Positions 8,128 to 62,212 of a DNA stretch of 64,000 nucleotides are shown piece by piece. The first letter of the stretch is position 1; each line of letters starts with the position of its first letter. The stretch is from positions 62,001-126,000 of the forward strand of contig NIVC01000781.1 in the NCBI GenBank assembly GCA_002269645.1, read 5' to 3'. The notes beneath the pieces are model-generated. The model was given only the letters and a program-made list of their open reading frames with translations. It did not search any database and was not told the DNA's origin. This stretch comes from Macrostomum lignano (taxonomy: Eukaryota). Both the position numbers and the translations under genes were made by a program.

Positions 8128-9006
<879 letters not shown>

Positions 9007-15146: not shown

Positions 15147-15180
<34 letters not shown>

Positions 15181-17047: not shown

Positions 17048-17159
17048 CTGCGACACACAACTGTGCCGCTCTGAGTGTTCTCAAACTCCAGTCATGATGA
17101 TGGACTATACTCAGTTTTAAAACGGCCGTCAGTAGCTGTTGGCTACCGACAGCTGACTG

Positions 17160-18671: not shown

Positions 18672-24428
<5,757 letters not shown>

Positions 24429-28900: not shown

Positions 28901-29041
28901 GACTTTGATGACTGGCAGCAAGCCGGTTGCTGAGTAAGCTGACGGAGATGGTACCAGCGTCTGCTCTTCATCATGTTGCCGCTTTTCAAGCAGCTCCACT
29001 GTCTCTGAATCGGTTTTATCCTCATCTGCAGCTGCTTGCAT
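25991..29041 (-). CDS. RING-CH (MARCH-family) membrane E3 ubiquitin ligase, ~370 aa. Exons 28653-29041 and 25991-26714
   Basis: C4HC3 pattern CQLC...PCSC...HLAC...CSVC followed by two hydrophobic TM segments. The ATG at 29041 has an upstream in-frame stop. The phase-2 donor AG|GTGAGT joins TTCTGCAG|C in frame. Probable 5'UTR exons lie near 29390-29425 and above 29718. Confidence 0.8.
26765..28547. repeat. 24-bp minisatellite (AAGGGTAGTTCAGGGAAGA[A/T]TACT) filling the RING-CH intron, with a 600-bp internal duplication
   Basis: Directly visible. The variant pattern at 27301-27600 recurs at 27901-28200. Confidence 0.97.
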
Positions 29042-29124
29042 TGTTCCTCCGCTCGGTTGCAGTCTGAAGAATTATTTCTGGGATTTGCTAACGATCTGAA
29101 AGACATGATTATCTTAGCTTCCCA

Positions 29125-29278
29125 CATGATTATCCTGCATCTCCCCCCACATGATTATCCTGCATCTCCCCCCCCCCACATGCTTATCCTGCATCTCCCC
29201 CCACATGCTTATCCTACATCTCCCCCCACATGATTATCCTGCATCTCCCCCCCCCCACATGCTTATCCTGCATATCCC
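29125..29278. repeat. Short ~25-28-bp repeat (CATGATTATCCTGCATCTCCCCCC) in the RING-CH 5'UTR intron
   Basis: About 5-6 copies visible. Confidence 0.85.
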
Positions 29279-29939
29279 CAAAAATTTTTTCAACCCAATC
29301 CACTCTGCGGTGAATTAATAAAGAATATCATTATTAACAATGAATGTAAATTCAGTAAAATAGAATTCAAGTTTCTTACCTGTTAAACTTGCTTGCCCGG
29401 ACAGCAAAAGCAGTCCTGTTTTAACTGTTTAATTGTTAGCACTCGATGATATACTAGAAGAAAGTCACTGGCCTCAACAGATGAGAAGCAAACCATTTAT
29501 ATTTGCGTTTAAAAAATCCAAAGAGCGATAAAATTGTAAAGAGAAAGGCCTGAGTTTGGCTTCAAGCTTGTAAGCTGGTTGAGGCCAGCATATAACAGTA
29601 CAATATAATAGCAGAGTGCTGGGCACAGGCACACAGGGGTCAGAGTGGGGTGGCATTACTGCCAACATTCAATGAGCACAATGACAATGCCTAGATGCCT
29701 TCTCCATTTTCATTTACCTGGCTTGGCTTGTTTAATTGGACAAACGAGCATAACAATGTACAGTAGCAACGAGTAGCGAGTGCACAGTGCCCGCATGCGC
29801 TGTACGCATGATGCGTAATACGATTACAGGCAGAATGACAGCTGACTAATAAATGTCACCCTATAGCCTAGGCACAGGTGTATGATGTTATAGGGGCAGA
29901 TTCGAAGGTATTACATTTTTAGACGTGAACGTTTGCGTA

Positions 29940-30490
29940 AGGAAGGGAGGAACAGAGAGGAAAAGGGGAGAGGGGAAGAAGGGGAGACAGGAAGAAGGGG
30001 AGAGGGGAGGAAGGAGGGGTGAAGACTGTAGGAAGAAGGGGGGAAGAGGGGAGGAAAGAGGGGGAAGAGGGGAGGAAGGAGGGGTGAAGACGGTAGGAAG
30101 AAGGGGGAAGAGGGGAGGAAGAAGGGGGGAAGAGGGGAGGAAGAAGGGGGGAAGAGGGGAGGAAAGAGGGGGAAGAGGGGAGGAAGGAGGGGTGAAGACG
30201 GTAGGAAGAAGGAGGGAAGAGGGTAGGAAGAAGGAGGGAAGAGGGTAGGAAGAAGGGGTGAAGACGGTAGGAAGAAGGGGGAAGAGGGGAGGAAAGAGGG
30301 GGAAGAGGGGAGGAAGGAGGGGGAAGAGGGGAGGAAGGAGGGGGAAGAAGGGAGGAAGGAGGGGGAAGAGGGAGGAAGGAGGGGGAAGAGGGGAGGAAGG
30401 AGGGGAAGAGGGGAGGAAGGAGGGGGAAGAGGGGAGGAAGGAGGGGGGAGAGGGGAGGAAGGAGGGGGAAGAGGGGAGGAAGGAGAAAGG
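29940..30490. repeat. Polypurine (G/A-only) low-complexity tract
   Basis: GGAAGAGGGG-type repeats, almost free of pyrimidines on +. Confidence 0.95.
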
Positions 30491-31149
30491 CCAAAAGAAA
30501 TGAAACAAATAATTCCTTAAAATTTGTCAGTTCAGCTGAACCCGACCATTTTGATAATTATTATGAATACGCAAGTTATTATTAAGCAAGAGCAGAGATT
30601 AAGTAGCAATAATAATGTTAAATGGATAAAAATTGAAGCACAAAAAGAAGAGCATAGAGCAGAGATAGCTCGTATTACGGAGAGAACACTAATTACTACA
30701 CACATAAGAGAAAACAGAGCTGCCAAAAACATTAATTAAACAATGCACTTCGTATACTACTGATATAGATATAGCAAGACTACTTATTAACTAGCAGGTA
30801 AGAGCGTCAATAACGTAGATAGGATTATAATTTAAAGCGCAACAAAAAAGAAATTAGATCAGACGGTACAGGTTGAAAACGATGACGGAACAAAAAAGGT
30901 CATTTTTAGATTTTTTGTACAAAAAATATTTATTAAGTACAAACTTCAGACTGAAGTGCAAATAGCGACATAATAATTGTTTAAGAAGCCGGTTAACAAA
31001 ACTTTAACTTAGCCATAAGTATTATAATGTCAGGATAGTATACACTGCACATGATTACAGAATCGGTGAACATGTACAGAGCAGATGAAGTGATTTCCAC
31101 TTATTTAGTGCTTTACAAATATTAGCTTCAATTCCGGATTTAGGACATC

Positions 31150-31465
31150 AAGGGCGATTCTAAGGACACATTTAGGGCGATTCTAAGGACACATTTAGGG
31201 CGATTCTAAGGACACATTTAGGGCGATTCTAAGGACACATTTAAGGAGACTTAAAGGGCACATTTTGGGCGATTCTAAGGACACATTCAGGGCGATTCTA
31301 AGGACACATTCAGGGCGATTCTAAGGACACATTCAGGGCGATTCTAAGGACACATTTTGGGCGATTCTAAGGACATATTTAGGGCAATTTTAAGGACACA
31401 TTGAGGGCAATTTTAAGAAAACATTGGGGGCGATTCTAAGGACACATTCAGATCGATTCTAAGAA
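31150..31465. repeat. 23-bp minisatellite (GGGCGATTCTAAGGACACATTTA) 3' of the RB-like stop
   Basis: Directly visible. Confidence 0.95.
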
Positions 31466-31565
31466 CCCCTTCAGGATGAATACCAAGCGACAGATTAAGG
31501 ACTAATGATTAAAAAATTCGGCATGAGCATTAAGAATGTCAAAGTCCCCAGATAGCTAATCAAGC

Positions 31566-34500
31566 TCAACGAGCAGTGGTAGACGTACTCAACAAGTTGA
31601 GCTTCTTGGCAGCATTAGGCGACAATTCCATGCCAATGTGATGCGAAGTGGCCTGCCGTTTGCCCAGCAGTTTGGTGGCGTGCTGCAGTATGGCGGCATT
31701 GATCGCTTGAACGTCCTTGTCAGACGAGGTGAGAAAATTGTAACCGATCCGTTTAGAAGACGGTATGCCGGAGGTCAACAGCAGTGTGCTAGACGTGCCC
31801 GATCGAATGATGAGGTGCGCCTCAGCTTCCTCGTCAGTGAGTAGTCGACAGGCCAGCACCTGAGGTTAATAAGTGTTAATAAGGATGTTCTGTTGGGACT
31901 GTTAGGTCGCTTGTGGCTGTTCTGACATCCAATACGACCTCATTCTGACACCCCACTATGGCCTCATTCCGACAACAATATGGCCTCATTCTGACACAAC
32001 AATATGGCCTTATTCTGACACCAATATAGCCCGTTCTGACAACAATATGGCCTCATTCTGACACCCCCAATATCACAACCCACCATACCCTACTCCAAAA
32101 TCACATCACAGAGAGCCTCTGACACCCCACAACAGAGCCTCTGACACCCCATAACAGAGCCTCTGACACCCCATAACAGAGCCTCTGACACCCCAAAACA
32201 GAGCCTCTGACACCCATAACAGAGCCTCTGACACCCCATAACAGAGCCTCTGACACCCCATAACAGAGCCTCTGACACCTCATAACAGAGCCTCTGACAC
32301 CTCATAACAGAGCCTCTGACACCCCATAACAGAGCCTCTGACACCTCATAACAGAGCCTCTGACACCTCATAACAGAGCCTCTGACACCTCATAACAGAG
32401 CCTCTGACACCTCATAACAGAGCCTATGAGACCCACACAATAGAGACACAATTACCCCGTCCACCCACAAAAGCAGCCACAAGCGCACCTGTCTGATATG
32501 ATCGCCCTCCTCGGTGGTGAACACGGCATTGTAAAACTGGATAATATCGCCAGCATTGCCTCGATTATCTAGCGGCACAGTTCGAAACAGAGTGTCGGTG
32601 GCCTGACCTCCGGCAGCCACGGTGGACGAGCTGCCAGTCAGATTGGCTACCCGGCGATGAGCGGCCAGGATGTGCGCGAATCTGATTGGACAGGGGGGCG
32701 ACGGTTGAGCCGCCCTAGCCGCGGCGAATAGGCCGCAGGCGATCACGTGATCCAGGTGGCGATTGCGCAATAGGCCGGGATTGTCGCGCAGCACCCGATT
32801 AATGATGACAGCGGCTCGTTGCTTAGAGACGGGGTTCAACAGGTGCAACTCGGAGGACAGCTGGGCAAGACGGGTGTCGCACAGGCGGTGCAGGTGACGG
32901 TAGAAAGCCTGACAGGAGGGGATTAAACGGGGATTTTAATAGTGAAATTGAATAGAATAGTTTCTTAGAAACTTTTTGAAGGCAAGCTATCAAAAATTGT
33001 ATGGTTTGACTTATTCTACGTAAGTCTTAACTAGGGAGGGAATTCAGTAACTAGGGGGGGGAATTCAGTAACTAGGGAGGGAATTCAGTAACTAGGGAGG
33101 GAATTCAGTAGCTAGGGAGGGAATTCAGTAGCTAGGGAGGGAATTCAGTAACTAGGGAGAGAATTCAGTAACTAGGGAGGGAATTCAGTAACTAGGGAGG
33201 GAATTCAGTAACTAGGGAGGGAATTCAGTAGCTAGGGAGGGAATTCAGTAACTAGGGTGGGAATTCAGTAACTAGGGAGGGAATTCAGTAACTAGGGAGG
33301 GAATTCAGTAACTAGGGAGAGAATTCAGTAACTAGGGAGGGAATTCATTAACTAGGGAGGGAATTCAGTAACTAGGGGGCGGGATTCAGTAACTAGGGGG
33401 CGGGATTCAGTAACTAGGGGCGGGATTCAGTAACTAGGGGGCGGGATTCAGTAACTAGGGAGGGTTTTCAGTAACTAGGGAGGGAATTTAGTAACTAGGG
33501 GGGATTCAGAAAATAGGGAAGGAATTAAGTAACTAGGGTAAAGGAATTCAGTGATTAGAAAGGGAATTAAAAGACTGTGGAGTCACTTTCTTGACCCTAC
33601 CAAAACTCAATAGCTTCATTTGAGCTATTTAAATGACAGTCTAAGAATTGGGTAAACAGAGGAGTAACTAAACTAAGTCATCTAAAAAGTGCCCCAATAA
33701 TTTAGATCAAGCAAGACACACCTGCAGTGCGGACAATCCTTTGCTCATCTTAGGCGAAGTGGCTGTGGAAGCCACCAGAGGACGCTGGCATTCAACGGCT
33801 GAGTAGCCGCGGCCGCGATTCTGCTGCACTAGCTTCCAGAGCGGACTGCCGGCAGTCCAGGCTAGAGAGTCCACAACGCGATCAACGCACAGACGGAGGT
33901 GTCGAACAATGTCGCGAGGAAAGTCCACCGCTTCAATGAGGCTCTCTACGATCTGTAGGGTGGTATGATCGAGACAAAATGAAGGGCGCTGGTACGCTTT
34001 GCGTTTCTTAGAGCTAATTGATAGTGCGTGCCAAGACTTTTGAATTTAAGGTCGAATTTAGTACTAGTCTCTGGCAATGGGACAGTCAAGGGCCGATGTA
34101 CACCAGCACCAGAGGCGCCAGCACCAGAGGCGCCAGCACCAGAGGCGCCAGCACCAGAGGCGCCAGCACCAGAGGCGCCAGCACCAGAGGCGCCAGCACC
34201 AGAGGCGCCAGCACCAGAGGCGCCAGCACCAGAGGCGCCAGCACCAGAGGCGCCAGCACCAGAGGCGCCAGCACCAGAGGCGCCAGCACCAGAGGCGCCA
34301 GCACCAGAGGCGCCAGCACCAGAGGCGCCAGCACCAGAGGCGCCAGCACCAGAGGCGCCAGCACCAGAGGCGCCAGCACCAGAGGCGCCAGCACCAGAGG
34401 CGCCAGCACCAGAGGCGCCAGCACCAGAGGCGCCAGCACCAGAGGCGCCAGCACCAGAGGCGCCAGCACCAGAGGCGCCAGCACCAGAGGCGCCAGCACC

Positions 34501-37500
34501 AGAGGCGCCAGCACCAGAGGCGCCAGCACCAGAGGCGCCAGCACCAGAGGCGCCAGCACCAGAGGCGCCAGCACCAGAGGCGCCAGCACCAGAGGCGCCA
34601 GCACCAGAGGCGCCAGCACCAGAGGCGCCAGCACCAGAGGCGCCAGCACCAGAGGCGCCAGCACCAGAGGCGCCAGCACCAGAAGGGCGCCAGCACCAGA
34701 AGGGCGCCAGCACCAGAAGGGCGCCAGCACCAAGGGTCAGATGACCTCCCTTCCACTATAAAAATCGAGTCTACTAGCCAAGGCACCCACCTTGAACAGG
34801 TGAAACGCGTGAGTGCCAGACGCCTCCAAGCACCACGCTAGCGAGGTGGAGCAGCCGAAGCTGTACAGCACCACCTGGGAGCAGGCGGCGAACAGGCAGG
34901 CTAGCAGAGTCCGGTTACTCAATAGAGACGACAATCGAACGCCAAGCTGATCTTCGTCTGGCACTTTATCAGCTTCGCAGGTGAGAATAGCGTCTAGCGT
35001 CATGTAGAACAGAGTCTCAGTGAGATTCGCACGGCGCTGCATTTCGTTGCGATTCACGTCGGCTTCCGTGACCGCTAAATCGTAGGCCGACAGAAAGTTG
35101 CTGCGCAGCTGGTTCACCTGGGGAAGTGCGGGTGGGGATAATTTGGGTCTGCGACACGAGCAGATGGACTTGGGAAGGAATTCAGCTCGTAAGTAGGGAA
35201 TTAAGTGACTCAGAGAGAGAGGGAGGGAACTCAGAGACTAAGGAGAAATTCAGTGACTAGAAAGGGAATAAAGTAAATAGGGAGGGAATTCAGAGATTAA
35301 GTAGGTATTTAACTGACTAGGGAAGAAATTCATAGACTAAGTAGGGAATTGAGTGACTAGGGAGCGAATTCAGAGATGAAGTAGGGAATTAAGTGACTAG
35401 GGAGGGAACTCAGAGACTAGGGGGAATTAAGTGACTATCGAAGGCATTCAGTGTCTAGAAAGGTGAATTAAATGACTAGGGAGGGAATTAAGTGACTAGG
35501 GAGGGAATTAAGTGACTAGGGAGGGAATTAAGTGACTAGGGAGGGAATTAAGTGACTAGGGAGGGAATTAAGTGACTAGGGAGGGAATTAAGTGACTAGG
35601 GAGGGAATTCAGTGACCATGGAAGGGTTTCACACACTAGCAAAATAATTCGGTGATTAAAAAGCAGATTTAGATACAAGAAAAGGTGAATTCAGAGCTTA
35701 TTAGAAAAGGGTTTGAGAATCTGGGGGGACTAAGGCAAATAAATGGGATAAAAGTATCCCACGCCAGTTAACACAGCGTATAAAAAGCTGTCACTCACCT
35801 GAGCCCTAATATCATCCCAAGGAGCCGTTCCCGAGCAGTACTGCCTCATCTTAGACAGAGTGGCCTCTCCAAACTCCCGCCTGCGGCCGGCCAGCAAAGC
35901 CTGCAGTCTGGCAACGCCCTGCGCTTGTATAGTTGGCGTCAAATAATCTCCTTTGTAGCCTTGAAGCAGCAGTTTGTCCGGATTAGCAAACTGTTGCACA
36001 ATATCAACATCCTCAGTTGCTAGGCGAAGCTGAGCGCCGGCCAACACGCGTTGTAGGCGGGGATTCAAGCGGCTGGCTTCTTCGTCTAGTAGAAGGCGGC
36101 AATCACCGCGAATTGGGGCGCCGACCTGACAAATATGCAGTGATTAAAGGGTAGAACAGTAACTAGACTGAAGGATCGAAGGGTAGAAAACGGAGTAGCT
36201 GAATTACATGTACAAAGAGGGTAAAAGAAGGGGTAGGTAGGTTAATCATAAAGCGGGGTAGACGAGATGGTAGGTTAATGAAAAAGCGGGGTAGAAGAGG
36301 GAGTAGGATATGGTTAAACAGGGGTAGAAGATGGAGTAGGTAGGTTAAGGTTAAACAGGGGTAGAAGATGGAGTAGGTAGGTTAAGGTTAAACAGGGGTA
36401 GAATAGGGAGTAGGTTAAGGTTAAGCAGGGGTAGAAGACGGAGTAGGATATGGTTAAACAGGGGTAGAAGATGGAGTAGGTAGGTTAAGGTTAAACAGGG
36501 GTAGAATAGGGAGTAGGTTAAGGTTAAGCAGGGGTAGAAGAGAGGGTAGGTTAAGGTTAAACAGGGGTAGAAGAGGGAGTAGGTTAAGGGGTTAAGCAGG
36601 GGTAGAAGATGGAGTAGGTAGGTAAGGTTAAACAGGGGTAGAATAGGGAGTAGGTTAAGGTTAAGCAGGGGTAGAATAGGGAGTAGATTAAGGTTAAGCA
36701 GGGGTAGAATAGGGAGTAGGTTAAGGTTAAGCAGGGGTAGAAGAGGGAGTAGGTTAAGGTTAAGCAGGGGTAGAATAGGGAGTAGATTAAGGTTAAGCAG
36801 GGGTAGAATAGGGAGTAGGTTAAGGTTAAGCAGGGGTAGAAGAGGGAGTAGGTTAAGGTTAAGCAGGGGTAGAAGAGGGAGTAGGTTAAGGTTAAACAGG
36901 GGTAGAAGAGGGAGTAGGTTAAGGTTAAGCAGGGGTAGAAGAGGGGTAGTCGGGTAGATCCACAGATAACTACAGAGAAGGGTCCAGGACTTGTAGGTCC
37001 TCAGTAACACATATATAATGAAATTCATTAAGATTTCAACCAGCTATTCTCACCTCTTTCTCAGCCACATCCGACAGTAGAATCCGTTCGTCCAGATCGC
37101 CATCGGACAGCACAAACATCTCGTAGGTGCTATTGAGATGCAGCGAAGAGTGATCAAAGTCGGACGTCTCCAAGCTCAAATAGAAATTATTAATTCCCGT
37201 GAGAATTTTCTCCTCAAACAGTCGTTCTAAACTGGCTCGAAAATAATTGGCCTGTACAACTTTGGCGTTGACGCAGGACGCGTGGGCCAGTTCGCACAGA
37301 TCCTCCAGGATGCTTAAACTGGATCGATCGCGCGGCGCGAACTGCGGGTTCAGCAGATCCGACCTGCTGTTCTTGTCTGACAGACAGACCATGTAAAGCC
37401 AGTCGATGGTCACTAGCAGCAGCAGGTGGCAATTGACTAGATCGTCTGCTATTGTAGGATAGAATGCCTTCACCTGCGGGATTGTGGGTTGGGGATTGTG

Positions 37501-40500
37501 GCATGGGATTATGCATGGATTTGAATCTGTTAGGAGGTAAGATTAATAAAACTATGCCTACAGAATTATGATATACAGTTAATAAGATCTAATAAAGGAC
37601 TGAAAAGATTTCAGTATTTCAGTATTCTATTCCACTGAAAAGATTTCAGTGGGACTGAAAAGACCACTGTAGGATTAGGAAGAACCACTGTAGGATTAGG
37701 AAGAACCACTGTAGGATTAGGAAGAACCACTGTAGGATTAGGAAGAACCACTGTAGGATTAGGAAGAACCACTGTAGGATTAGGAAGAACCACTGTAGGA
37801 TTAGGAAGAACCACTGTAGGATTAGGAATAACCAATTTAGGATTAGGAAGAACCACTGTAGGATTAGGAAGAACCACTGTAGGATTAGGAAGAACCACTG
37901 TAGGATTAGGAAGAACCACTGTAGGATTAGGAAGAACCACTGTAGGATTAGGAATAACCAATTTAGGATTAGGAAGAACCACTGTAGGATTAGGAAGAAC
38001 CACTGTAGGATTAGGAAGAACCACTGTAGGATTAGGAAAAACCACTGTAGGATTAGGAAGAACCACTGTAGGATTAGGAAAAACCACTGTAGGATTAGGA
38101 AAAACCACTGTAGGATTAGGAAAAACCACTTAGGATTAGGAAAAACCAATTTAGGATTAGGAAGAACCACTGTAGGATTAGGAATAACCAATTTAGGATT
38201 AGGAAAAACTACTGTAGGATTAGGAATACTCACTGTAGGATTAGGAACATTTACTGTAGGATTAGGAATACTCACTGTAGGATTAGGAACATTTACTGTA
38301 GGATTAGGAAAAACTGTAGGATTGGAAAATCTACTGTAGGATTAGGAAAAACCACTGTAGGATTGGAAAATCTACTGTAGGATTAGGAAAAACCACTGTA
38401 GGATTAGGAAGAAGCACTGTCTGTAGGAGTACGAATAACCACTGTAGGATTAGGATTAGGAAGTACCATTCACGGATTAAAAAGATAAGTTTTAGGACTA
38501 CAAAGAATTTCACTTTATCCCAAAAATTAAAATTATATAGATAGGGCAGCAGATAAATGAGCAAAATGAAGAGCCTCCTCACCTGCAAGAACAGAGTCCA
38601 AGCCAGATTAAACAAATCATGGCTGCCAACCTGTCTAACCGTAGCGGAAGCGCCGCCCTTCTGCCTGGACTTGCTAGTTGTCGAAGCATTATTACCAACA
38701 GTGCCAGCATTGCTCAAATTATCCGCATCATCCGACACATCAGTTCGGAATATTTTCGGAAACACTACAGTCATCTTGCGAAAACAAATAGCCGTAATGC
38801 TGAACTGGCGTTCCAGCATCATCATTCGAGATTTGAAATCTGTCGACATATCGACCATGTTAACCCACTGGCGCATTCGGTGAAAGAACTGCATCAGAGT
38901 GACGCCAGATAGCTTTAATAAGCGCGACAATGACAGCATACCGGAGCTGATGTCGCTCAGGTGCGTGCCAGACGTCTCGGCGTGACTGCGCTGTTTGACG
39001 CAATCGAACAGGGAACAGACGAGCCACTGCATTGGCTCGCCATCCAGCGAGTAGTTGGACCAGACAGCTAAATTCAAACAGTTGAAGGTGAGAATTAAAA
39101 ATTAAATATCTTTCAATAGAAGCATTTCAGTCTACACATACCTTAGCCAAGGTAAGTTGCAAAATTCCCACCCAAAAGACAATACTAATTAGATGACGAG
39201 GCATTCAGCCTTAGTAGTACAGATATAGTTACTCCCGCCGTTTACCAAAATTACGTTAAGTGGCATTTCTGGTCAAAAAGTAAGTTGCATGGTCAGTGTA
39301 AACTTAAGGGGATAAGGAAATTCTTTCAATGTTTTGAAAGAATTTACAACATTGTTATTGCCTACACCCACACCAATGTAAGCCATCTACAGGAGGCCCA
39401 ATGAGTTTCAATTCCTACTTTTTAATATGTAATGCGATGTCGCACTTATAATGCGACTTATAAGTAACCTACCTACAAATCAGTCTTGAATATAATGAAT
39501 CATTTCAATATCCTAATGGATAGAATCAGGAAAAGATTAAGAGTCATTCAAAATCTAGAAGATAAGAATTATTAATAAAGGTGCTAGATCAAACGTTGGC
39601 AAACTCTAGCCTGCAGGACACATGTAGCATACAAAGACTATCTAGTCCTTCAGGTTCTTTGAAGCTTCTTAGTAGCAATCACAGTCACTAAAAGGTTTGT
39701 GCCTTCTTAGCTTTTTTCTTCTAGATCTTCTCTCATCTCTCATCTCCTTTTTTCCTCTCTATTTTCCCTCTATTTTCCCTTCTTTCTTCTTTTCTCTTCC
39801 TTCTCCCTTTCTCTCGCCTTTTTTCTCCCCTTTACTTTTCTCTCTATAGTCTATATAGTCTAATAGTCAATAATAGAGGTTGGATTTTATATTTGCAAAC
39901 ATGTATTATAAGCTTGTAAGATACAAATGTAAAAAGTAACAAAACAAGAAAATAAACCATTATATATTAGATTATAGATACTTGGTAATGTCAATAAATA
40001 TAAAATATATTAGGGTAAAACATCATCAACCACACAGTGATTCTTCAAAACTGGACAAGTTTATCAGCTTCTATTTTACTACTGTGCTTGATAATAACAA
40101 ACTTAAGAGCTTAACTTAACCACTCATTTGAAAGAACTTGTAACTATCTGCAAAATGGCACATCCATTGTTTGAAAGTTTTCTATAGAAAAAAAAGATTT
40201 GTTTTTATCCAATGAAAAAATCATGAAATTTACATTTTGCAAAGATTTTTGTTTTTCAGCAGCTCCTGAAAAAATGTTTATAACTTTATAATCATGGCTC
40301 CATTTCTTATACCCAATGTCTCATTTTATTCAGCATAAAATGATCTATTGATTGACATTAAATGTGACTTCAATTTGCTGGTAACTTTCACATTTAGCCC
40401 TGTCTGGTTGATGATGCAATTCTGTCCATTTGGTTTGGTTTACAGATTTGTGCACCATCAACCAGACAAAGAATCATCAACTAGATGGGTAAAAAATGCA

Positions 40501-43500
40501 AGCAATAAAAAGTTTTTAGCTAGTAAAATAAACAGAATATATGTTTTGTTTTTTCACCTAAATTACAAATCAAAGCAGTTTTTATAAGTTTGTTGTTAAA
40601 AAACAATAACCATTTTGTTTTACACATTTGAGCTTTGAACACCAGATTTTCAGAATTTGTTTTATAAATCTCCAGTAAAAAAACAGTCAAATGTTTTATT
40701 CACTATGTACAGTAGTAAAGCAAAGGCTGGCAAAATATCAATTATTTTCAGACAATAGTGTCAAAAAGTGACGGACTCCAACTTGCTAAACTCTATGGAG
40801 TAAATAGGCCTAGCTTATTTTAACTAGCAACATTACTACGCTAACTTTAGTACTGCGGCCAATAACTATCTGCATTTGGTGCCAGAGATATATATGTATT
40901 CAGCAAGTAGATGTGGTAGTGGCTTTAAAAAGGTGCTTGAATAGTTTGGTGCATACATGTGCAAATACATGTGCAACCTCCAAAATTCGGTCAGCCGTGC
41001 GACTTAGTTTTAACAAAAATGCGACGTAGTTTTTGGCCAAAAATGCGACTTACATATAAAAAAACCCGAAAGCAAAATTAACGCAACTTTGGGTAAACGG
41101 CAGGAGTAACTATGACTGTTTTATTAAGCTAAAATGCCTCGTCAGCTACTTAGTACTACTCTTCAGGTTATTTTTTGGGTGGGCATTTTTGCGACTTCCT
41201 TGATTGGCCACCAAATCGGTCGGCCAGATCGGCCGACTCGGCCGGATCGGCCGACTGTTGCGCATGTATGGTTTGGTGTGGGCTAAAGCCAAAACCAAAT
41301 AAACAAACATGGGTGTCCCCAAGCTGGCTACTCCCAATAGTGCCCTCTTGGTGCCACTAAAAATATTGCCATTACTAAGTAGCACCAGTGCCTTCAAGCA
41401 AACATGTAAATGTGGCATTCCATGCCCTTCATCATCCCCAGTGTGGCGCCCCAAGCATAGTGCAAGGTGCACCTATATAGATTGCCAATAAGCTCTATTG
41501 TATTTCAAGAACCACTATAGGAGTACATTTACTTTCTGTTTGCTATCTCAAATACAATAATCTATTGTTTCCTTATAATTAACTACTCCCATAGGTAAAA
41601 TTGAGATATTTATTGGGTTGTGTGCCGGGGATGCTAAAAGGACACCAAAAGCACGCTAAAGCATGCTCTAAAATGTGGAAGAGTCTTGTGTTCTGGGGCT
41701 AGCTTTGGGAGTACCTATTGGGGGAGGAGACGATTCAGTACAATGTAGCGCTATGAGGGCGCTTTGGTAGGGCGCAGCCAGGGCAGGGCAGCTTTAAGTT
41801 CACTGGGTTGCAGGGTGCTTTGGGAGAGCTTTACCCCTTCAAAAGAATCTCTGCTTGCCCAGCCCTTGGCTTTGCTTTGCTTCTTCCAAACAATATACCA
41901 AACTTTAGGGTGGTATACCCAAAGGAGCAAGGCTGAGGTGGGCTGTTCCTAGAATTTTCCTTAAATTCACTCATCACAATGTTTTCAGGTGTCTATAATT
42001 ATTACAGAAAGTGGACAGCCACCCCACTATAGTTGCACTACTGGTTTTTAGATAAATTGAGGATCTATAAAATATATATAGCTTGTGCCTCTAAAAATCG
42101 AAGGCATTTAGGCAGCCACTACTCATAATCATTAGTAATAGCTAGTATTGATTGCAGTAAGGCAAAATTAAAACCACCAGTATATATATGAAGCCTTATT
42201 ATTGACGCATTCTATACTATGCCATTCATCCATGATTCTACCGCCACCCTTGTTGGATCTCATCTAGTTAGGGTGGATGAATCAAAGCATTGAGACAATT
42301 GATAGAGGCCAACTCAATCTTCCAGTTTCAGTTGAATTTGCACATTACTGGCAGCTGAGCTCTAAATGGCAACTAATGCTTTATATGCCAACATGTTGCA
42401 TTCATGAGATAGAGATGTGATAGCTGTTTGTGAAAGTGCAAAAATGGGCAAAATTTGTAAGAACTATGCAATCATTGGCTGAATTGACTCTGTCTATATA
42501 ACACTCTATATCTGTCTCTCTTGTATATAAGAATTATAAGCTCACCTTGTTATCCAGGAAAGGTTTTTCTATATTTTGCATTAGGCCAACTTGCTCCTCT
42601 TTGCCTGTCTCTTCTCCGCTGGTCTCCTATCTCTCTGCCCATCTTCTCTCTGTCTATCTCCTCTCTGCTAGTCTCCTTCCTCCCCCCTGACTCCTCTCCA
42701 CCCATCTCCTCTTTGCTAGTATCTTCTCTGCCCATCTCCTTTCCACCCAACTCTTCTCTGCCCATCTCCTTTCCACCCAACTCTTCTCTGCCCAACTCTT
42801 TTCCACCTATCTCCTCTTCTCCTATCTTCGGTTTAAAGATCATACATGCGCAACAGTCGGCCGAGTCGGCCGATCCGGCCGACCGATTTGGCGGCCAACC
42901 AAAGAAGTCGCAAAAATGCCCACCCGAAAAAACACCCAAGCAGTAGTACTAAGTAGCTGACGAGGCATTTTAGCTTAATAAGACAGTCATAGTTACTCCT
43001 GCCGTTTACCCAAAGTTGCGGTAATTTTGCTTTAGGGTTTTTTACATGTAAGTCGCATTTTTAGCCAAAAACTACGTCGCATTTTTTGTTAAAACTAAGT
43101 CGCACGGCCGACCGAATTTTGGAGGTTGCGCATGTATGTTAAAGATACATATACATCTCTAGTTTTGGATGAAAAATGACTATAATTTATTTTTTCTAAA
43201 CCAAAATACTTAAGTCAACACTTTTCTTAAAGCTAAGAAAGTTTTCTACAACTTTTTTTCTTTGGCTCTTATATCTACAAAATATAATTCATAAATTCAG
43301 TTTTATTTTATAAAATATGACTTTCTTGTCTGGTTGATGATGTTTTATCCTATGCTTTTACTAATGAAAGTGCTTATTCCCATGGTCCTATACCAATTTC
43401 CAATTTCCATGGTCCTATTCCAATTTTATCCACACAGATCTGTGTCAATAATTTTCAGCTTATCCCCACAGCAGCTTATTAAAATAGCTGCCATCATTCA

Positions 43501-46500
43501 AGTCTATAGGCCATGTCAATAATTCCAATTTTTATCCACATGGATCCATGTCAATAATTTCTAGCTTATCTTCATAGCAGCTTATTGGAATAAAGAACCT
43601 TAAATAAATCTGTTCAAAAACAGTCTTTTTGTTTTCAATGTTTGACAAATCTTCCAAATGAACTACATGTACTGAATACTAAATAACATTGAATACTTTG
43701 TTAAAACTTTTTGTGATTAAAAAGGTTAATTTTAAATATTTAATTAGCTGCCGGCTTTGCTTAGAATGACCAAATGACTCAAAGATTATGGCAAATAAGA
43801 CCTGCAAAATTCAAAATTCAATACATACATGCGCAACCCCCCTGATTTACACTGGCCATGCGACTTACTTTTTGACCAAAAATGCGACTTACCTGTGAAA
43901 GAAACCCTAGAGCAAGATTAACACAATTTCGGGTAAACGGCAGGAGTAACTATAACTGTCTTAAAAGGGCTAAATGCCTTGTCATCTAATTAGCACTACG
44001 TCTGTATTTTTTGGGGTGGGCATTTTTGCGACTTACCCCTGGTCCACCACAATTTACGGTAGCCAGATCAGCTAGGTCGGCCAGCAGTTGCGCATGTATG
44101 ATTCAATATATAATAATAATGATAATATTACTATTAATAATGACTATATCAATTTAACGTAAGTACACAAAACTAAACACAAACAACTGCACCATCTTAG
44201 CCATGGGGATAAGCTGAAAATTATTGACATAGATCTGTGTAGATAAAATAGGAATTATTGGCACAGGACTGTAGGGATAAGCACTTCCTTTATTAATACT
44301 AATAGTAATAAGCAACAATTAGTCTATACTTTTTACTTAGAGTTATAATTATAAAATGAATTTAATAACATCATTCTTTTTCTATAATATATTATTATCA
44401 ATTTGACCAATATTATTAAGTATTTATAAATTTTTATTTTCTTCAGAATTAGAATCCCAAGATTCCTAACTATTAGGCCCTAGTAATACTATTATTAGGC
44501 CTAGTCTAGTGTTCCACCATAGCCTTAACTATGGCTACAGGATCCTAGGGCAAATATGGTAAAATAGGTGCCTACGGCAGCTACGGATACGCCTACAGTA
44601 GCTAGCTGCTCTTATGGCTATGACTACAGAAATATGGCAGTTGCTGTCATATTCCATAGATTCCATAGTGTGGATCATGCGAAGTGCACGCGAGAAACGA
44701 CCCAAAGCTAATTCCCAAAAGCACGCCGACGACAAGCGAATGCACACCTATGCACGCCGATGCATGCCTACATATTTTAAAACGTATTTTAAATACGTAA
44801 AAAACGTATTTTAAATTGCATTGTATAAAACAAAGCAACAAATGATGTACAAAAGAAATGATATATCTTTAAAAACATGTATTTCTCATACATTAATTTA
44901 TTTAATAGTCTTATACACTGTTTATTTACAATAGTTTTTTTCAAAAGTTAAATACAATAATACATATTTTATGTCTGCTTACCATTGCATTGGCAGCTTT
45001 GCCACATCAGGTGCCAGGCACACGGCACGCGGCGCACGCCAGGCACGCCAGTGTATTTATGTAGTGTGCATATTGCATGCCAAATGCACGCCACTTACCT
45101 AATTGCATGCCGGTGCACACCACTTTTGAAAATGCATGCGAGAAAATTCTTGCGTGTACTACATGATCTACACTATGGCATAGATTCCCGTAGCCGTAGT
45201 TATTAATATTAAAAAATTGAAAAAATATTAGAAACAGGTAGAATAAAACAAAGATACTTTTAGTAAACTGTATTATCAACCTAGAATTAGAAACTTATAA
45301 AATGTATCTAAAAAAGTACAATAAAAGACTAGCAAACTCTAATTTTAATTAATGTGAAAAAGTTTAGCGTTAGTACTTTCAGTAACGATTAAGTATTGTT
45401 GCTCTGAAAAAAGACAAAATATAATCTTACAAGGGCAATTGAGTGTTTCTTTTATTTTCTAACTTAATTTGCAGTCAGGGTTTTTTTTTGTGCGCAGAGT
45501 GTGCGTATGCACCCTAAATTTTAAAATCGCACCCTGAAATTAAAAAAGTAGGTGCGGTTTAGGTGCGGTCTTATAACCATTTTTCTTTAAAGGCTTAACC
45601 ATGCTTAAGCTATTTTTTATGCACTGCCTTAAAATATGAAACAAAATAACTCTTTAAATCCTATTAAGTCATATAGGCGATATAGCCTATAGCTATAGCC
45701 TTATGTAAGATATTAAAATATACATTCCCAGTTGTCTGAAATGTGAGCAATGTGAGGGTTTCACGAGAGATATTCAGACAAAGGCTCCCTAAAACACGCC
45801 CCGCACCGGGCCCCGAACTGCTACACATTATAACATTTTTTGTCAATGCAGTATTTGATTGCAAGGAAAAGTTAAAATAGTAATGGAATAAATATCTTTA
45901 TTTATTTTTTTAAATATTATTATTTTTTATATTCTCGTTTTTATTATTAAATTATAATATTATTATTTTATTAATATTATTATTAATATCACTTATTGTT
46001 CACCGAATTTTATATTTCAAAGTAAAAAAAACTAAATTTAATAAAAACTTGAAGCTTAACAGAAAACGCATTCTGAAGTGTCTTTAGTTATAGTCCAATT
46101 TGTTTTAATGTGTAGCGCTGCAGGGTGGTGCGGGGCGTGTTTTAGAGAGACCCATTCAGACAGACATTCAAAATGATTGTCTGTAACTTCAAACAAAATT
46201 GACCCGCTTCAACCATCTTTTTGGCAAATACTTACGCAAGTGTTGGGCGTCAAATAAGCTTTAATTTATTAACTGAAGTAAAAATCCTTCTGACATACAT
46301 TGATTTAAAAATTGCTTAGCAACACTAGCTCTGATTAGAAATCGCTTTACTGTTGACTAAAATTGTTTTGATCGTAGCAGCCTAAAAGCAGATACTGGAT
46401 TTAAAAATGCTTCGATTTACTCTATACGCATGTCTCAGCTTCAAAATGACACCTCAGGCGTCGCAAAAGACAGCCTTGATGCTGAGATATTCGACACTAA

Positions 46501-52100: not shown

Positions 52101-53766
52101 ATGGATCTGTATATTGACTGTCCACTTGGGCCCACCTTGAGACTGTCTGCATCGCCATGCGACACTGTGCTATCAGTGAAGCTGCGCCTGCAAGCGCTTC
52201 TGTGCAACAGTCTGCCAGCCAATCAGCAGCGACTTGTCTGGCGTACCTGCGAACTTGTCAATGAGCGACAACTAAGCGACTATAGCCTTGAATCTGGCTG
52301 CACTATTAAACTACTGCCGCGTCTGTTTGCAGGCCCAACTAATATGCAGCAGCTGCCGTCTGCTTCTGCGCTTCAGCAGCAACAGCAGCAGCTCTTAGCT
52401 CTTCAGGCTTATCGATTGACGGTGAGGTAGCATTTGGATGGGCTTTATTGGAACTAGAAGGGGATCAGTTTTTGCTCCTATTGTCAGCAAGATCCCTTTT
52501 GTCTACCTGCTGACTGAGATTTACCGTTATTTCACACTATCCACAGTTTATTGCACACAGTCCACGCTATTTCCCTGAATTCCATGCTGACTGGGATTTC
52601 CCTGTATTGCCCGCTGACTAGGATTTCTTTGCGTTTTACGCTAACTACTTTTTTCTTTATCCTCTGCCGACTGGGATTTCCCTCTATTCCACGCTGGTTG
52701 GGATTTCTCTCTATTCCACGCTGGCTGGGATTTCTCTCTATTTCACGCTGGCTGGGATTTCCCTCTATTCCACGCTGGTTGGGATTTCCCTCTATTCCAC
52801 GCTGGCTTGGATTTCCCTCTATTCCACGCTGGCTGGGATTTCTCTCTATTTCACGCTGGCTGGGATTTCCCTCTATTCCACGCTGGTTGGGATTTCCCTC
52901 TATTCCACGCTGGCTTGGATTTCCCTCTATTCCACTCTGACTGGGGTTTCCCTCTATTCTAGGCTGAATGGGGTTTCCCTCTTTTGTAGGCTTGTCGGGA
53001 TTTCCGTTTATTCCACACTGGTTGGGAATTCTATTCCACGCTGCCTGGGATTTCCCTCTATTCTAGGCTGAATGGGATTTCCCTCTATTCTGGGTTTCCC
53101 TCTATTCCACGCTGGCTGGGATTTCCGTTGCGTTTACTAAACAGCTTATTTAGCTCATCAGTGCTAATTTACTCGCAGATGGAGCAGCAACAATTGCAGC
53201 AGCAGTTACAACAGCATCATCAGCAACCGGTGCTACCAACAACAAGCTACTCTGCCACAATGCCAGTCGGTTACTATCTAGTCTATTGCTTGCGCCCATC
53301 TAATAACAGGGACGGTATTAGCAGTGTAGGCGGCGGCGGCAGCGTAGGCGGAGGCGGCGGCAGCGTAGGCGGGGGCGGCGGCGTCGGCTTTGATCTGGTC
53401 TGCGTGTCCTACTGCTTAGCAACTGCAACAACGTCGACAGCAATAATAGCAAATAGTGCCAATGAGGCCCAGACTTCCACTAGCAGCAGCAGCAGCAGTT
53501 CACCCAAATCCCAACCAGATTTGTTGCACATCTCTCAGGTAGACGCTCGAGATTCGGTCAATCCAAGAAGCGTCGATCGTTGCCAAGCTTGTGGACGACG
53601 AACCGGTCCGTCGTCGAGTTTCGAATGTCGCTGCGGTCGGATCTATTGCGCCAGGCACCGTTACCCGGAGAGCCACTCGTGCAGCTTCGATTTTAAAGAG
53701 CAGGGTCGGCAACTCCTGCGCGAATCGAATCCCAGGGTATTGGCGCCTAAATTGCAGCGCATCTGA
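52101..53766 (+). CDS. ZFAND4: Ubiquitin-like + AN1 zinc-finger protein (ZFAND4/ANUBL1-like), ~302 aa. Exons 52101-52421 and 53179-53766
   Basis: N-terminal UBL (DTVLSVKLRLQ...QQRLVW...LSDYSLESGCTIKLLPRL) and C-terminal AN1 finger CQACGRR...CRCGRIYCARHRYPESHSCSFDFK...NP.V.APKLQRI. The intron is phase 0, GT-AG. Confidence 0.88.
52655..53128. repeat. 27-bp minisatellite (CTGGGATTTCCCTCTATTCCACGCTGG) in the ZFAND4-like intron
   Basis: Directly visible. Confidence 0.95.
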
Positions 53767-53861
53767 TTTTTGCAATGCGCATGCTGGACTTTGGCGGGGC
53801 CGCAACGGACTTTGGATACGCTTGGTTTGTTTGAATGCTTCACGATTGGGACTAGGGCCAG

Positions 53862-54810
53862 GTTAACACCTGGAACCAGTGATAGTTGAACACCTGGAAT
53901 CAGTGATAGTTTAATACCTGGAATCAGTGATATTTGAACACCTGGAATCAGTGATAGTTTAATACCTGGAATCAGTGAGTTTAACACCTGGAATCAGTGA
54001 TAGTTTAACACCTGGAATCAGTGATAGTTTAACACCTGGAACCAGTGATAGTTGAACACCTGGAATCAGTGATATTTTAACACCTGGAATCAGTGATAGT
54101 TTAATACCTGGAACCAGTGATATTTGAACACCTGGAATCAGTGATATTTTAACACCTGGAATCAGTGATAGTTTAATACCTGGAATCAGTGATAGTTTAA
54201 TACCTGGAATCAGTGATAGTTTAACACCTGGAATCAGTGATAGTTTAACACCTGGAACCAGTGATAGTTGAACACCTGGAATCAGTGATATTTTAACACC
54301 TGGAATCAGTGATAGTTTAATACCTGGAATCAGTGATAGTTTAATACCTGGAATCAGTGATAGTTTAACACCTGGAATCAGTGATAGTTTAACACCTGGA
54401 ACCAGTGATAGTTGAACACCTGGAATCAGTGATATTTTAACACCTGGAATCAGTGATAGTTTAATACCTGGAACCAGTGATATTTGAACACCTGGAATCA
54501 GTGATATTTGAACACCTGGAATCAGTGATATTTTAACACCTGGAATCAGTGATTTTTGAACACCTGGAATCAGTGATAGTTGAACACCTGGAATCAGTGA
54601 TATTTTAACACCTGGAATCAGTGATAGTTGAACACCTGGAACCAGTGATAGTTGAACACCTGGAATCAGTGATAGTTGAACACCTGGAACCAGTGATAGT
54701 TGAACACCTGGAATCAGTGATAGTTGAACACCTGGAATCAGTGATAGTTGAACACCTGGAATCAGTGATAGTTGAACACCTGGAATCGGTGATAGTTGAA
54801 CACCTGGAAA
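53862..54810. repeat. 24-bp minisatellite (ACACCTGGAATCAGTGATAGTT[G/T]A) 3' of the ZFAND4-like stop
   Basis: Directly visible. Confidence 0.97.
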
Positions 54811-55986
54811 CTGTAAAATCAAGCTAAGCGTGACCAAGTATCCAACTGTGAAGCACCGCCCTGCCCAGAGCACCATGGACCATATTATATACTGAAAAGA
54901 TTTGAGTTTCCAATGCCAGATACAGTTGGAACTGAGCTCAAATTTCAGGCAAACTTAATTCTTGCCATCGGGCAGGCAAGCATACAAATTAGCAGCTAAA
55001 AGACTGTGTCGCTAATTATATGTTTTAGCATTATGCAAATTGGCGCAATACTTACATTAATACCGACTATGTACGCCTTCGGTGCTAATATCTAATCTTG
55101 CGCATTATTACTGGAATTCTGCAACAGCAGCTCAGGTGAAATGGGTACAAAAAACATCTCAGTTTTATCTGAATATATTCAATTATCCTGATTTACTTTC
55201 GTTGCCATGCAATAATTCGGTTGCATTTTTATTCATCATCATTTTAATTTTTATCCTTTCCTTAACTAAACAAAATCATTTTATCCGGTGTTTTAATTTT
55301 CAATAAGTTTTTTAACGAACACAGAAAAACAAATTAATCAAAAGCTAGCAGAGAAGTATGGCAGACGTGTAAAAAAGCCATTGTTGCATTTTCTGTTTAA
55401 TGATCAAAAATATCTGTTCCCAGAGCAAGTGAGGCCATTGTCGCAGCTGTTTGAGTGCAAACGCGCACCTGTACACCCCTCTTACCACGTCAGGAGGCCG
55501 AAGCTCCTAAAATGCACAGAGTTTCAGCGAGCAAATGTATTATTTACTAACCAAGTTAATAACTAATTATCGCCCCAGACTCACACCCAATTTCGGAACG
55601 CGCGAGCTCCATCAAAGCCAACAGTTTTGTCCACAGTAAATCGGCATTGTTGCTCGGAAGAATTTTAATTTTTCTATTTACAACTATCAATAAAGAAAGA
55701 TGATTGCGCGGTCTTTTTGAGCGGTCTTATTCATTTTTTGAAGTAGAATTATCGACTTGTATCAAGTGGCAAAACGAGAAGAGAGAACAGGAAAGAGGAG
55801 ATAAAAGGAGAGATGAGAGATGAGAGAGAGATGCCCGTATTTGGTCGGGCAAACGGATTTTAGGCGGCAGGCGCGTCGCCACCGGGGGGACAGGTCCCCC
55901 CCAGTAAAAGTTATAGGGGACATCCCAATTCTTTGTCCCCCCCCACCCCACCTTTGTTGACCCGTTATGGAAATCAATAATTTTGC

Positions 55987-58900: not shown

Positions 58901-60938
58901 CCTGCGGCGCTAAAATGAGTGCCTGCGGCGCTAAAATGAGTGCCTGCGGCGCTAAAATGACTGCCTGCGGCGCTAAAATGAGTGCCTGCGACGCTAAAAT
59001 GAGTGCCTGTGGCGCTGAAATGAGTGCCTGCGGCGCTAAAATGAGTGCCTGCGGCGCTAAAATGAGTGCTTGTGGCACCAAAATGAGTGCCTGCGGCGCT
59101 AAAATGAGTGCCTGCGGCGCTAAAATGAGTGCCTGCGGCGCTAAATGAGTGCCTGCGACGCTAAAATGAGTGCCTGTGGCGCTAAAATGAGTGCCTGTGG
59201 CGCTAAAATGAGTGCCTGTGGCGCTAAAGTGAGTGCCTGCGGCGCTAAAATGAGTGCCTGCGGCGCTAAAATGAGTGCCTGCGGCGCTAAAATGAGTGCC
59301 TGCGGCGCTAAAATGAGTGCCTGCGGCGCTAAACTGAGTGCCTGCGGCGCTAAAATGAGTGCCTGCGGCGCTAAAATGAGTGCCTGCGGCGCTAAACTGA
59401 GTGCCTGCAGCGCTAAAATGAATGCCTGCGGCGCTAAAATGAGTGCCTGCGGCGCTAAAATGAGTGCCTGCGGCGCTAAAATGACTGCCTGCGGCGCTAA
59501 AATGAGTGCCTGCGGCGCTAAAATGACTGCCTGCGGCGCTAAAATGAGTGCCTGCGACGCTAAAATGAGTGCCTGTGGCGCTGAAATGAGTGCCTGCGGC
59601 GCTAAAATGAGTGCCTGCGGCGCTAAAATGAGTGCTTGCGGCACCAAAATGAGTGCCTGCGGCGCTAAAATGAGTGCCTGCGGCGCTAAATGAGTGCCTG
59701 CGGCGCTAAAATGAGTGCCTACGGCGCTAAAATGAGTGCCTGCGGCGCTAAAATGAGTGCCTGCGGCGCTAAAATGAGTGCTTGCGGCACCAAAATGAGT
59801 GCCTGCAGCGCTAAATGAGTGCCTGCGGCGCTAAAATGAGTGCCTGCGGCGCTAAAATGAGTGCCTGTGGCGCTAAAATGAGTGCCTGCGGCGCTAAAAT
59901 GAGTGCCTGTGGCGCTAAAATGAGTGCCTGCGGCGCTAAAATGAGTGCCTGCGGCGCTAAAATGAGTGCCTGCGGCGCTAAAATGAGTGCCTGCGGCGCT
60001 AAAATGAGTGCCTGCGGCGCTAAACTGAGTGCCTGCGGCGCTAAAATGAGTGCCTGCGGCGCTAAAATGAGTGCCTGCGGCGCTAAACTGAGTGCCTGCA
60101 GCGCTAAAATGAATGCCTGCGGCGCTAAAATGAGTGCCTGCGGCGCTAAAATGAGTGCCTGCGGCGCTAAAATGACTGCCTGCGGCGCTAAAATGAGTGC
60201 CTGCGGCGCTAAAATGACTGCCTGCGGCGCTAAAATGAGTGCCTGCGACGCTAAAATGAGTGCCTGTGGCGCTGAAATGAGTGCCTGCGGCGCTAAAATG
60301 AGTGCCTGCGGCGCTAAAATGAGTGCTTGCGGCACCAAAATGAGTGCCTGCAGCGCTAAATGAGTGCCTGCGGCGCTAAAATGAGTGCCTGCGGCGCTAA
60401 AATGAGTGCCTGTGGCGCTAAAATGAGTGCCTGCGGCGCTAAAATGAGTGCCTGTGGCGCTAAAATGAGTGCCTGCGGCGCTAAAATGAGTGCCTGCGGC
60501 GCTAAAATGAGTGCCTGCGGCGCTAAAATGAGTGCCTGCGGCGCTAAAATGACTGCCTGCGGCGCTAAAATGAGTGCCTGCGGCGCTAAAATGAGTGCCT
60601 GCGGCGCTAAAATGAGTGCCTGCGACGCTAAAATGAGTGCCTGTGGCGCTGAAATGAGTGCCTGCGGCGCTAAAATGAGTGCCTGCGGCGCTAAAATGAG
60701 TGCTTGCGGCACCAAAATGAGTGCCTGCGGCGCTAAAATGAGTGCCTGCGGCGCTAAATGAGTGCCTGCGGCGCTAAAATGAGTGCTTGCGGCACTAAAA
60801 TGAGTGCCTGCGACGCTAAAATGAGTGCCTGCGGCGCCAAAATGAGTGCCTGTGGCGCTAAAATGAGTGCCTGCGGCGCTAAAATGAGTGCCTGCGGCGC
60901 TAAAATGAGTGCCTGCGGCGCTAAATGAGTGCCTGTGG
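55987..60938. repeat. ~5-kb 21-bp satellite (TGAGTGCCTGCGGCGCTAAAA) with higher-order structure
   Basis: About 235 units. Diagnostic variants and 20-bp units recur with a ~1.65-kb period. Confidence 0.98.
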
Positions 60939-62105: not shown

Positions 62106-62212
62106 TGGTGAGAGTCTCGAACACCGGTGTAAAAAATCTTTAACGTTCTACCAGCCGTCAAAGGATTGAATATGTAAGCTCAGGCTCAAAGCACCGCTTG
62201 CTAACTGACAAA

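Follow-up and report, generated by a model that had tools for sequence, protein, structure and literature searches.

Miniature inverted-repeat transposable elements with an internal 28S rRNA segment in Macrostomum lignano

Background

Transposons with fragments of host genes are known from several systems, which include Pack-MULEs, CACTA and hAT transduplication, and the filler DNA of Ac/Ds and P elements that arises by abortive gap repair. Other mobile elements contain sequence derived from ribosomal DNA (rDNA). The 5S-derived short interspersed nuclear elements (SINEs) SINE3 and AmnSINE1 and the 5S-carrying terminal-repeat retrotransposons in miniature (TRIMs) Cassandra and Ajax are built around an rRNA-gene module (Table 2, PMC10946416). 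SINE28 is cited in the same review as a mammalian SINE derived from 28S (Longo et al. 2015, cited in PMC10946416). Pokey and mPok are piggyBac elements and MITEs (miniature inverted-repeat transposable elements) of Daphnia that contain rDNA-derived sequence and are tied to the same conserved 28S neighborhood that is discussed here (PMC10946416). In the present work a 64,000-nt stretch of the Macrostomum lignano contig NIVC01000781.1 was analyzed (the window, to which all copy counts refer). It contains a family of MITEs with a central segment, referred to as the core, that corresponds to the H69-H71 region of the 28S rRNA of the large ribosomal subunit (LSU).

Anatomy of the complete copies

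Three complete copies were located: c1 at 40952-41270 (forward strand, 319 bp), c2 at 42841-43138 (reverse strand, 298 bp) and c3 at 43824-44100 (forward strand, 277 bp). Each of them lies between two identical 8-bp target-site duplications (TSDs), which are GTTTGGTG for c1 (left 40944-40951, right 41271-41278), TTAAAGAT for c2 (42833-42840 and 43139-43146) and ATTCAATA for c3 (43816-43823 and 44101-44108). The length of the duplication is fixed at 8 bp, and its sequence differs at each of the three insertion sites. A preliminary description of this DNA had reported three complete MITEs, each with its own perfect 8-bp TSD, and one truncated copy; the sequence check bore this out.

The same description had assigned a 14-bp terminal inverted repeat (TIR) to the complete copies. 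This repeat, CATACATGCGCAAC, is perfect in c2 and c3 at either end, whereas in c1 only the right end has it intact. The left end of c1 has decayed to CATACATGTGCAAA, with 2 mismatches to the TIR, and a 12-bp tandem duplicate comes after it. When up to 2 mismatches were allowed, the TIR occurred 7 times in the whole window, compared with 0.24 occurrences expected from shuffles. These seven matches are the six ends of c1, c2 and c3 and one internal duplicate. The subterminal motif ATGCGACKTA is also enriched (13 occurrences versus 4.6 expected) and falls almost entirely within the copies, and the palindrome TCGGCCGA is a further repeated subterminal motif of the family. The core is surrounded by arms of about 100-140 bp that are common to the copies and of non-rDNA sequence. 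As single-stranded DNA, c2 is folded at -58 kcal/mol (z -5.46) into a hairpin that runs through the element ends. The copies have no coding capacity, their longest stop-free stretches being 42-73 aa. The TIRs and TSDs by which they are bounded support the classification of c1, c2 and c3 as miniature transposons, that is, non-autonomous class II elements.

28S rRNA identity of the core

The cores were compared with generic eukaryotic 28S sequences rather than with the host's own rDNA, namely the Rfam consensus and two rDNA units, L001 (SPBV01000080.1, 1144-7013) and L002 (VAFL01000052.1, 1-4607). Both units are eukaryotic 18S-5.8S-28S units according to cmscan, and they gave the only matches of the pattern GGTAAACGGCAGGAGTAACTAT in prokaryotic genome contigs. 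They are deposited within bacterial metagenome-assembled genomes (Nitrosomonadales and Paracoccus denitrificans), which indicates binning contamination.

The copy nearest to rRNA is c3. Its core (43930-43993, forward strand) is identical to the Rfam consensus at 55 of 64 positions, exactly the gap-free count that had been made by hand in the preliminary description, and BLAST extends the match to 43917-43993. Against the real 28S of L001 the count is 56/64, with a BLAST E-value of 2e-18. The c1 core (41090-41153, forward strand) agrees with the consensus at 50/64 positions (E 9e-17, the match extending over 41075-41154) and the c2 core (42949-43012, reverse strand) at 51/64 (E 3e-16). In the truncated copy the core (39185-39248, reverse strand) likewise reaches 50/64 (E 1e-11) and retains the rRNA-like GGCGGGAG. 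The best unrelated 64-mer reached only 34/64 against the same consensus in an ungapped scan of both strands (128,000 positions of the window).

The Rfam model LSU_rRNA_eukarya (RF02543) matched the c3 core with 35.8 bits (E 7.9e-8), the c1 core with 24.7 bits (E 9.1e-5) and the core of the truncated copy with 18 bits (E 0.0064), in all cases at model positions 2239-2310. These cmscan runs were performed on excised 74-nt segments, and the E-values are valid for 74-base searches. All scores lie under the gathering score of RF02543 (50 bits), and about 72 of its 3401 positions are present. A true rRNA gene or array was rejected. No LSU match was reported by cmscan at the gathering threshold in the whole window, nor at E<=10 on stretches of 5.3 kb, 335 nt and 181 nt. 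The fragment is reported only if the searched stretch ends near the 5' end of the fragment, as a 5'-truncated match. Apparently, an internal fragment of a 3401-position model needs a nearby end of the stretch to be detected. Since the fragment was missed in long stretches, the excised 74-nt segments, the ungapped scan and BLAST against real rDNA were used.

BLAST of each copy against the two rDNA units gave one significant match, located in 28S (E 1e-11 to 2e-18), and nothing in 18S, 5.8S or the rest of 28S; the arms are without rDNA similarity. These alignments lengthen the match by about 15 nt in the 5' direction, at weaker identity, to a total of 77-81 nt, and these additional nucleotides may belong to the rRNA homology. 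According to the Rfam structure line, the covered part comprises the 3' strands of helices before H69, H69 itself, a single-stranded linker and most of H71. H69 corresponds to bases 1906-1924 (PMC2602781). A natural H69 variant, GGCAGGAG, is present in both rDNA units, so that no mutation of the transposon is required to explain the G>A change of c1-c3.

The identification of the central segment as LSU rRNA H69-H71, which had been made in the preliminary description, was thus confirmed by the cmscan positions and by BLAST; for the c3 core, both of the searches that it had named as a check were positive (35.8 bits for the excised 74 nt, E 2e-18 against real rDNA). Judged by these alignments, the segment is homologous to eukaryotic 28S rRNA.

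Subfamilies, truncated copy and a split fifth core

Among the complete copies, c1 and c2 are 90.6 % identical. Because c3 has an identity of only 77-78 % to either of them and is short of 22 nt in the left arm, at least two subfamilies, a c1/c2 type and a c3 type, are present in the window. The truncated copy belongs to a c3-like subfamily (about 39143-39312, reverse strand); it was recovered by BLAST and nhmmer, is without TIRs and sits about 70 nt upstream of an exon of a retinoblastoma (Rb)-like gene. It shares 68.8 % identity with c3 over 192 columns of the BLAST alignment (nhmmer E 7e-46). A short fragment at 39430-39470, adjoining the truncated copy, contains two or three copies of the subterminal motif (ATGCGACTTA / GTGCGACAT) and may be the remnant of another insertion.

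A profile search found exactly five core-bearing loci in the window. The fifth lies outside the region treated in the preliminary description, and its core is split into two halves on the forward strand, 22394-22431 (nhmmer E 8e-10) and 23724-23768 (E 1.4e-9), which were also found by BLAST. The halves are separated by a nested, hAT-like element of 1292 bp (22432-23723, forward strand), which is non-coding and inserted exactly in the centre of the core. It is bounded by the TIRs TAGAGATGCCC / TAGAGATGGCCC and by an 8-bp TSD, GTCTAATC / GTCTTATT, with 6 of 8 positions matching; the left half of the core ends in the TSD copy GTCTAATC. The motif TTTTGGG is repeated in the subterminal parts of this element. 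An R2 insertion as the cause of the split was rejected, as the insert has hAT-like TIRs and an 8-bp TSD. The fifth core shows the derived states of the family (see below). Its flanks align to the arms of c1-c3 at shuffle level, and no TIRs were found around it. Two readings fit the locus: an old fragment, or another element that contains the same module.

A span of 5 kb immediately 5' of the exon for DUF3452 in the Rb-like gene contains four of the five copies, in AT-rich, repeat-filled DNA. Although the sample is small, such a cluster would be consistent with a cut-and-paste element that hops locally. The truncated and the fifth copy are older than c1, c2 and c3, and such an age spread fits amplification over time. 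Two exact patterns specific for the MITEs had no match in metagenome contigs or viral contigs.

Positions 41059-41244 of c1 and 42858-43043 of c2 lie in opposite orientation, 1.6 kb apart and 5' of the Rb-like exon, and are 92 % complementary over 186 nt. Co-transcription of c1 and c2 would give a long double-stranded RNA, and the 28S-like segment would be part of it.

Further repeats surround the complete copies. The c3 copy is bracketed by the 52-nt inverted arms of another repeat family (43417-43468 and 44204-44255, 94 % complementary), and a direct copy of the arm of that repeat occurs 106 nt downstream of the left arm (also 43530-43592). The c3 copy appears to be nested within this 52-nt-arm repeat element. 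A 26-nt inverted pair, TAGGRTAAAACATCATCAACCAGACA, with a hAT-like TAGGG start brackets c1 and c2 (40011-40036, forward strand, and 43327-43352, reverse strand). A single 3.3-kb element (40011-43352) carrying both copies was considered and rejected, because no matching TSD was found. Inner partial copies of the 26-nt repeat form a hairpin at 40395-40474 with a sub-threshold match to mir-133 (24.5 bits, gathering score 55.5); this hairpin is almost certainly a repeat and not a microRNA.

Superfamily assignment

The hAT label of the preliminary description has its only basis in the 8-bp TSD, and it was not retained. Ends of hAT elements have the terminal pentamer 5'-YARNG. The nested element of the fifth core, with the terminus TAGAG, fits this rule. 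The pentamer of the MITE family, CATAC, violates it at its third (T) and fifth (C) positions. The length of the TSD agrees with hAT. Among the three TSDs, the Ac-type target pattern nTnnnnAn is represented by T at position 2 in 3/3 and A at position 7 in 1/3; these 4 of 6 half-sites are not significant in such a small sample (P ~0.09 at the local base composition). The Buster-type pattern nnnTAnnn is present in 0/3. A hAT transposase comprises a BED finger, a DDE domain and a hAT dimerisation domain, but no transposase open reading frame (ORF) was found in the window. Because of the deviating pentamer, the non-significant target pattern and the lack of a transposase in the window, the family was not filed under hAT.

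Elements of the P superfamily have TSDs of 7-8 bp, ends that start with CA and a transposase with a THAP domain, and the P element of Drosophila starts with CATG. The 8-bp TSD and the CAT start of the family are compatible with this superfamily, although this is a lead only. P would fit the family as well as hAT, and the family is best designated as an 8-bp-TSD MITE, probably of the hAT or the P superfamily.

Single origin and decay of the core

The change CTCTC>CTGTC is common to all five cores and TAGTGAC>TAGTAC to four of them. In addition, the centre is altered in all five, and the sequence TTATT at this place is common to c1, c2 and the fifth core. These shared derived states argue for a single acquisition instead of several: the 28S piece was acquired once, before the subfamilies split, and then copied by transposition. 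The preliminary description had proposed that a DNA transposon captured a piece of rDNA and amplified it; the derived changes in common support single acquisition and copying within the element. The hAT identity that had been attached to this proposal is not established.

The stems of H69 and H71, whose maintenance would be expected of an rRNA, are not preserved. In c1 and c3, two of six base pairs of H69 are disrupted without compensation, and more are broken in the truncated copy (NC lines of cmscan). Because of these broken pairs, the core is no working part of an rRNA.

The identity to rRNA is distributed unevenly along the core. The left 28 nt agree at 24-26 positions and the right 22 nt at 20-21, whereas the central 14 nt (CTCTTAAGGTAGCC) agree at only 4-8. 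In a gapped alignment the centre is modelled as a gain of three nucleotides (TTA) and a loss of three (TAG) in c1, c2 and the truncated copy; c3 is gap-free. The retrotransposon R2 nicks its target at AAGG/TAGC. The core centre is the recognition site of the homing endonucleases I-PpoI and I-Vdi141I and lies within the R2 target DNA, and it is intact in no copy. In LSU numbering the recognition site CTGACTCTCTTAAGGTAGCCAA spans bases 1915-1938, which overlap H69 (PMC2602781), and the R2 target DNA includes AAGGTAGCCAAATGCC (PMC12180492). The altered centre may have been inherited as a scar of the donor rDNA unit, or it may have arisen by simple drift within the founder.

Explanations for the 28S segment

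We consider it probable (roughly 0.75) that the copies represent a non-autonomous cut-and-paste MITE family of 277-319 bp, in which a 28S piece of 64-80 nt was captured once as filler and has since been a passenger. A trans-acting transposase of an 8-bp-TSD superfamily (hAT or P) would recognize the ends and the subterminal repeats and move the element. The 28S piece would have entered the founder as filler DNA during the repair of a double-strand gap after excision. The route may have been abortive gap repair or a template switch to rDNA, which is very abundant, or possibly to complementary DNA derived from rRNA, and the piece would have been carried passively ever since.

Several observations weigh against this explanation. 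In the comparison of c1 with c3, identity is 81 % for the core and 62 % for the arms (gaps counted, Fisher p 0.003), and the fifth locus retains the core alone between unalignable flanks. No autonomous partner was found in the window. The mobility of the family is deduced from TIRs and TSDs and not from an empty-site allele, the capture mechanism is a reconstruction, and the sample comprises five copies in one 64-kb window. The contrast between core and arms may also be explained by the arms being indel-prone and rich in CpG, and the fifth locus by its being a fragment.

Alternatively, the core could be a selected functional module, comparable to the conserved central domains of SINEs and common to more than one TIR family. 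Such a module might serve as a protein-binding site that aids transposition, as a decoy or landing pad for R2 or homing enzymes, or as a source of small RNAs with rRNA complementarity from co-transcribed inverted copies. The slower divergence of the core relative to the arms is what this alternative predicts, and so is a fifth copy in which only the core, with its family-specific derived states, can still be aligned. Moreover, the piece of rDNA that was captured is also the R2 / I-PpoI target region, and the inverted pair formed by c1 and c2 (186 nt, 92 %, 1.6 kb apart) is located in the same transcription unit or its flank. However, the part recognized by the endonucleases (CTCTTAAGGTAGCC) is the most degenerate one in every copy (4-8/14), and H69 pairing is not kept. 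The flanks of the core are 86-95 % identical to rRNA, which is approximately the value predicted for neutral decay since the split of c1 and c3. The nature of the arms can account for their faster apparent divergence, only five copies are available, and the fifth may be a mere fragment. A selected module is therefore unlikely.

A wider version, which we regard as rather improbable, holds that the H69-H71 segment is no passenger but acts in flatworm TIR elements as a core module that is conserved and exchangeable, a class II counterpart of the SINE core domains. Its retention would then be due to rDNA-directed machinery (endonucleases of the R2 or homing type, rDNA-binding proteins) or to small RNAs with 28S complementarity from inverted copies, and the scar at its centre would be the trace of an insertion or a cut that the donor rDNA unit received at its R2 / I-PpoI site.

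It is also improbable that the module was inherited from an autonomous, rDNA-associated transposon similar to Pokey, with the core as a relic of the donor insertion site that is scarred at the R2 / I-PpoI position. The best-modelled indels of c1, c2 and the truncated copy (+3, TTA; -3, TAG) lie exactly at AAGG/TAGC, this rDNA stretch is a known hotspot of mobile elements, and Pokey demonstrates that a life in 28S, with rDNA-derived sequence on board, is possible for DNA transposons. Yet the TSDs GTTTGGTG, TTAAAGAT and ATTCAATA place all three datable insertions outside rDNA, and the rDNA piece is contiguous and internal instead of flanking. Since c3 is gap-free, the scar may be ordinary drift, and the window provides no autonomous element.

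That the elements are retroposons with an rRNA-derived body, similar to SINE28, or dispersed orphan fragments of rDNA pseudogenes is very improbable. SINEs derived from 28S do exist (SINE28), and rRNA fragments are common as filler DNA. The 14-bp TIRs and the fixed 8-bp duplication of each complete copy are at odds with such an origin, as are the lack of an A-rich or LINE-like (long interspersed nuclear element) tail and the internal position of the rRNA-like piece between common non-rDNA arms. A retroposon of the SINE type is ruled out by the anatomy of TIRs and TSDs. Finally, a chance resemblance to 28S, in favour of which one could cite that cmscan reports nothing in long stretches or at the gathering threshold, has a negligible probability and is refuted by the agreement of the identity scan (50-55/64 versus a background maximum of 34/64 over 128,000 positions), BLAST (E down to 2e-18 against real rDNA) and cmscan (the same model coordinates in three separate runs).

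Genomic surroundings

The Rb-like gene (28649-39077, reverse strand) contains DUF3452, RB_A and RB_B exons. The RB_A and RB_B exons had a single match, the Macrostomum lignano protein A0A1I8FH98, to which they are near-identical exon by exon; a protein search with the N-terminal exon gave no match. The RB match identifies the host as this flatworm, or as a homeologue or very close relative. A FoxA gene is located at 14671-16372 (reverse strand). Its ORF has matches only to forkhead domains across Metazoa, and its N-terminal part changes frame or has an intron. A zf-AN1 gene lies at 53128-53766 (forward strand).

Minisatellite arrays are extraordinarily dense in the window (1-14500, 17000-20000, 27000-30500, 34000-38500 and 52500-62200). 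Their units are about 15-50 nt long and the arrays extend up to several kb; examples are those at 55.9-61 kb and at 37.6-38.5 kb with a 21-nt unit. The arrays are situated in and between GC-rich genes and give rise to long spurious ORFs in all frames.

Comparison with known systems

The table of rDNA-derived transposons in a 2024 review of the interplay between rDNA and transposons lists no MITE with 28S coding sequence (PMC10946416). In the searchable literature, including papers on Macrostomum, no such element is described and the text of the TIR was unmatched, although an uncommented entry in a repeat library such as Repbase or Dfam may exist. The novelty of a 28S-carrying MITE is therefore plausible. 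The family is a modest curiosity, with no demonstrated function, and it changes no major question. If it is abundant, many scattered 28S-like 64-mers would be present in the genome. These could lead to mislabelling as rRNA by repeat maskers, to stray binding of rRNA-depletion probes and stray read mapping, and to confused counts of Macrostomum rDNA pseudogenes. The family could also serve to find out whether rDNA-specific elements ever strike dispersed sites that resemble their target.

The family resembles Pack-type elements in being TIR-bounded and non-autonomous and in having an internal piece of a host gene that was acquired once and amplified, likely through template switching in gap repair. 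One internal 28S match per copy and element-specific arms were found, and the piece is common to five copies, as in that group. It differs from Pack-type elements in that the cargo is part of a 28S rRNA gene and not protein-coding, that the MITE is very small and that the cargo is its best-conserved part. With SINE28 it shares the dispersed occurrence and the 28S rDNA-derived sequence in the body of the repeat. SINE28, however, is a retroposon, whereas the present family has TIRs and a fixed 8-bp TSD and would therefore move by cut-and-paste.

Pokey and mPok are similarly DNA transposons whose family includes MITEs containing rDNA-derived sequence. In contrast to the present elements, Pokey has repeats of the intergenic spacer, TTAA duplications and site-specific insertion into 28S; the Macrostomum family has a piece of the 28S coding region, 8-bp TSDs and insertion sites outside rDNA. 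As in the 5S-derived SINEs and in Cassandra and Ajax, a mobile element is arranged around an rRNA-gene module. In those cases the module provides a retroelement with a promoter for RNA polymerase III, whereas the carrier is here of class II, and we know of no promoter role for the 28S H69-H71 fragment. The same rDNA stretch is further involved in the biology of R2 and of I-PpoI / I-Vdi141I, whose target is the centre of the present core. These systems insert into the stretch, but here it is carried as cargo, with mutations of the recognition site in all copies. Both ingredients of the family are thus known, TIR elements with fragments of host genes on the one hand and rDNA-derived mobile elements on the other, and their combination is apparently undescribed. 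As a MITE that contains 28S coding sequence, the family lengthens the short list of mobile elements derived from rDNA by a class II case.

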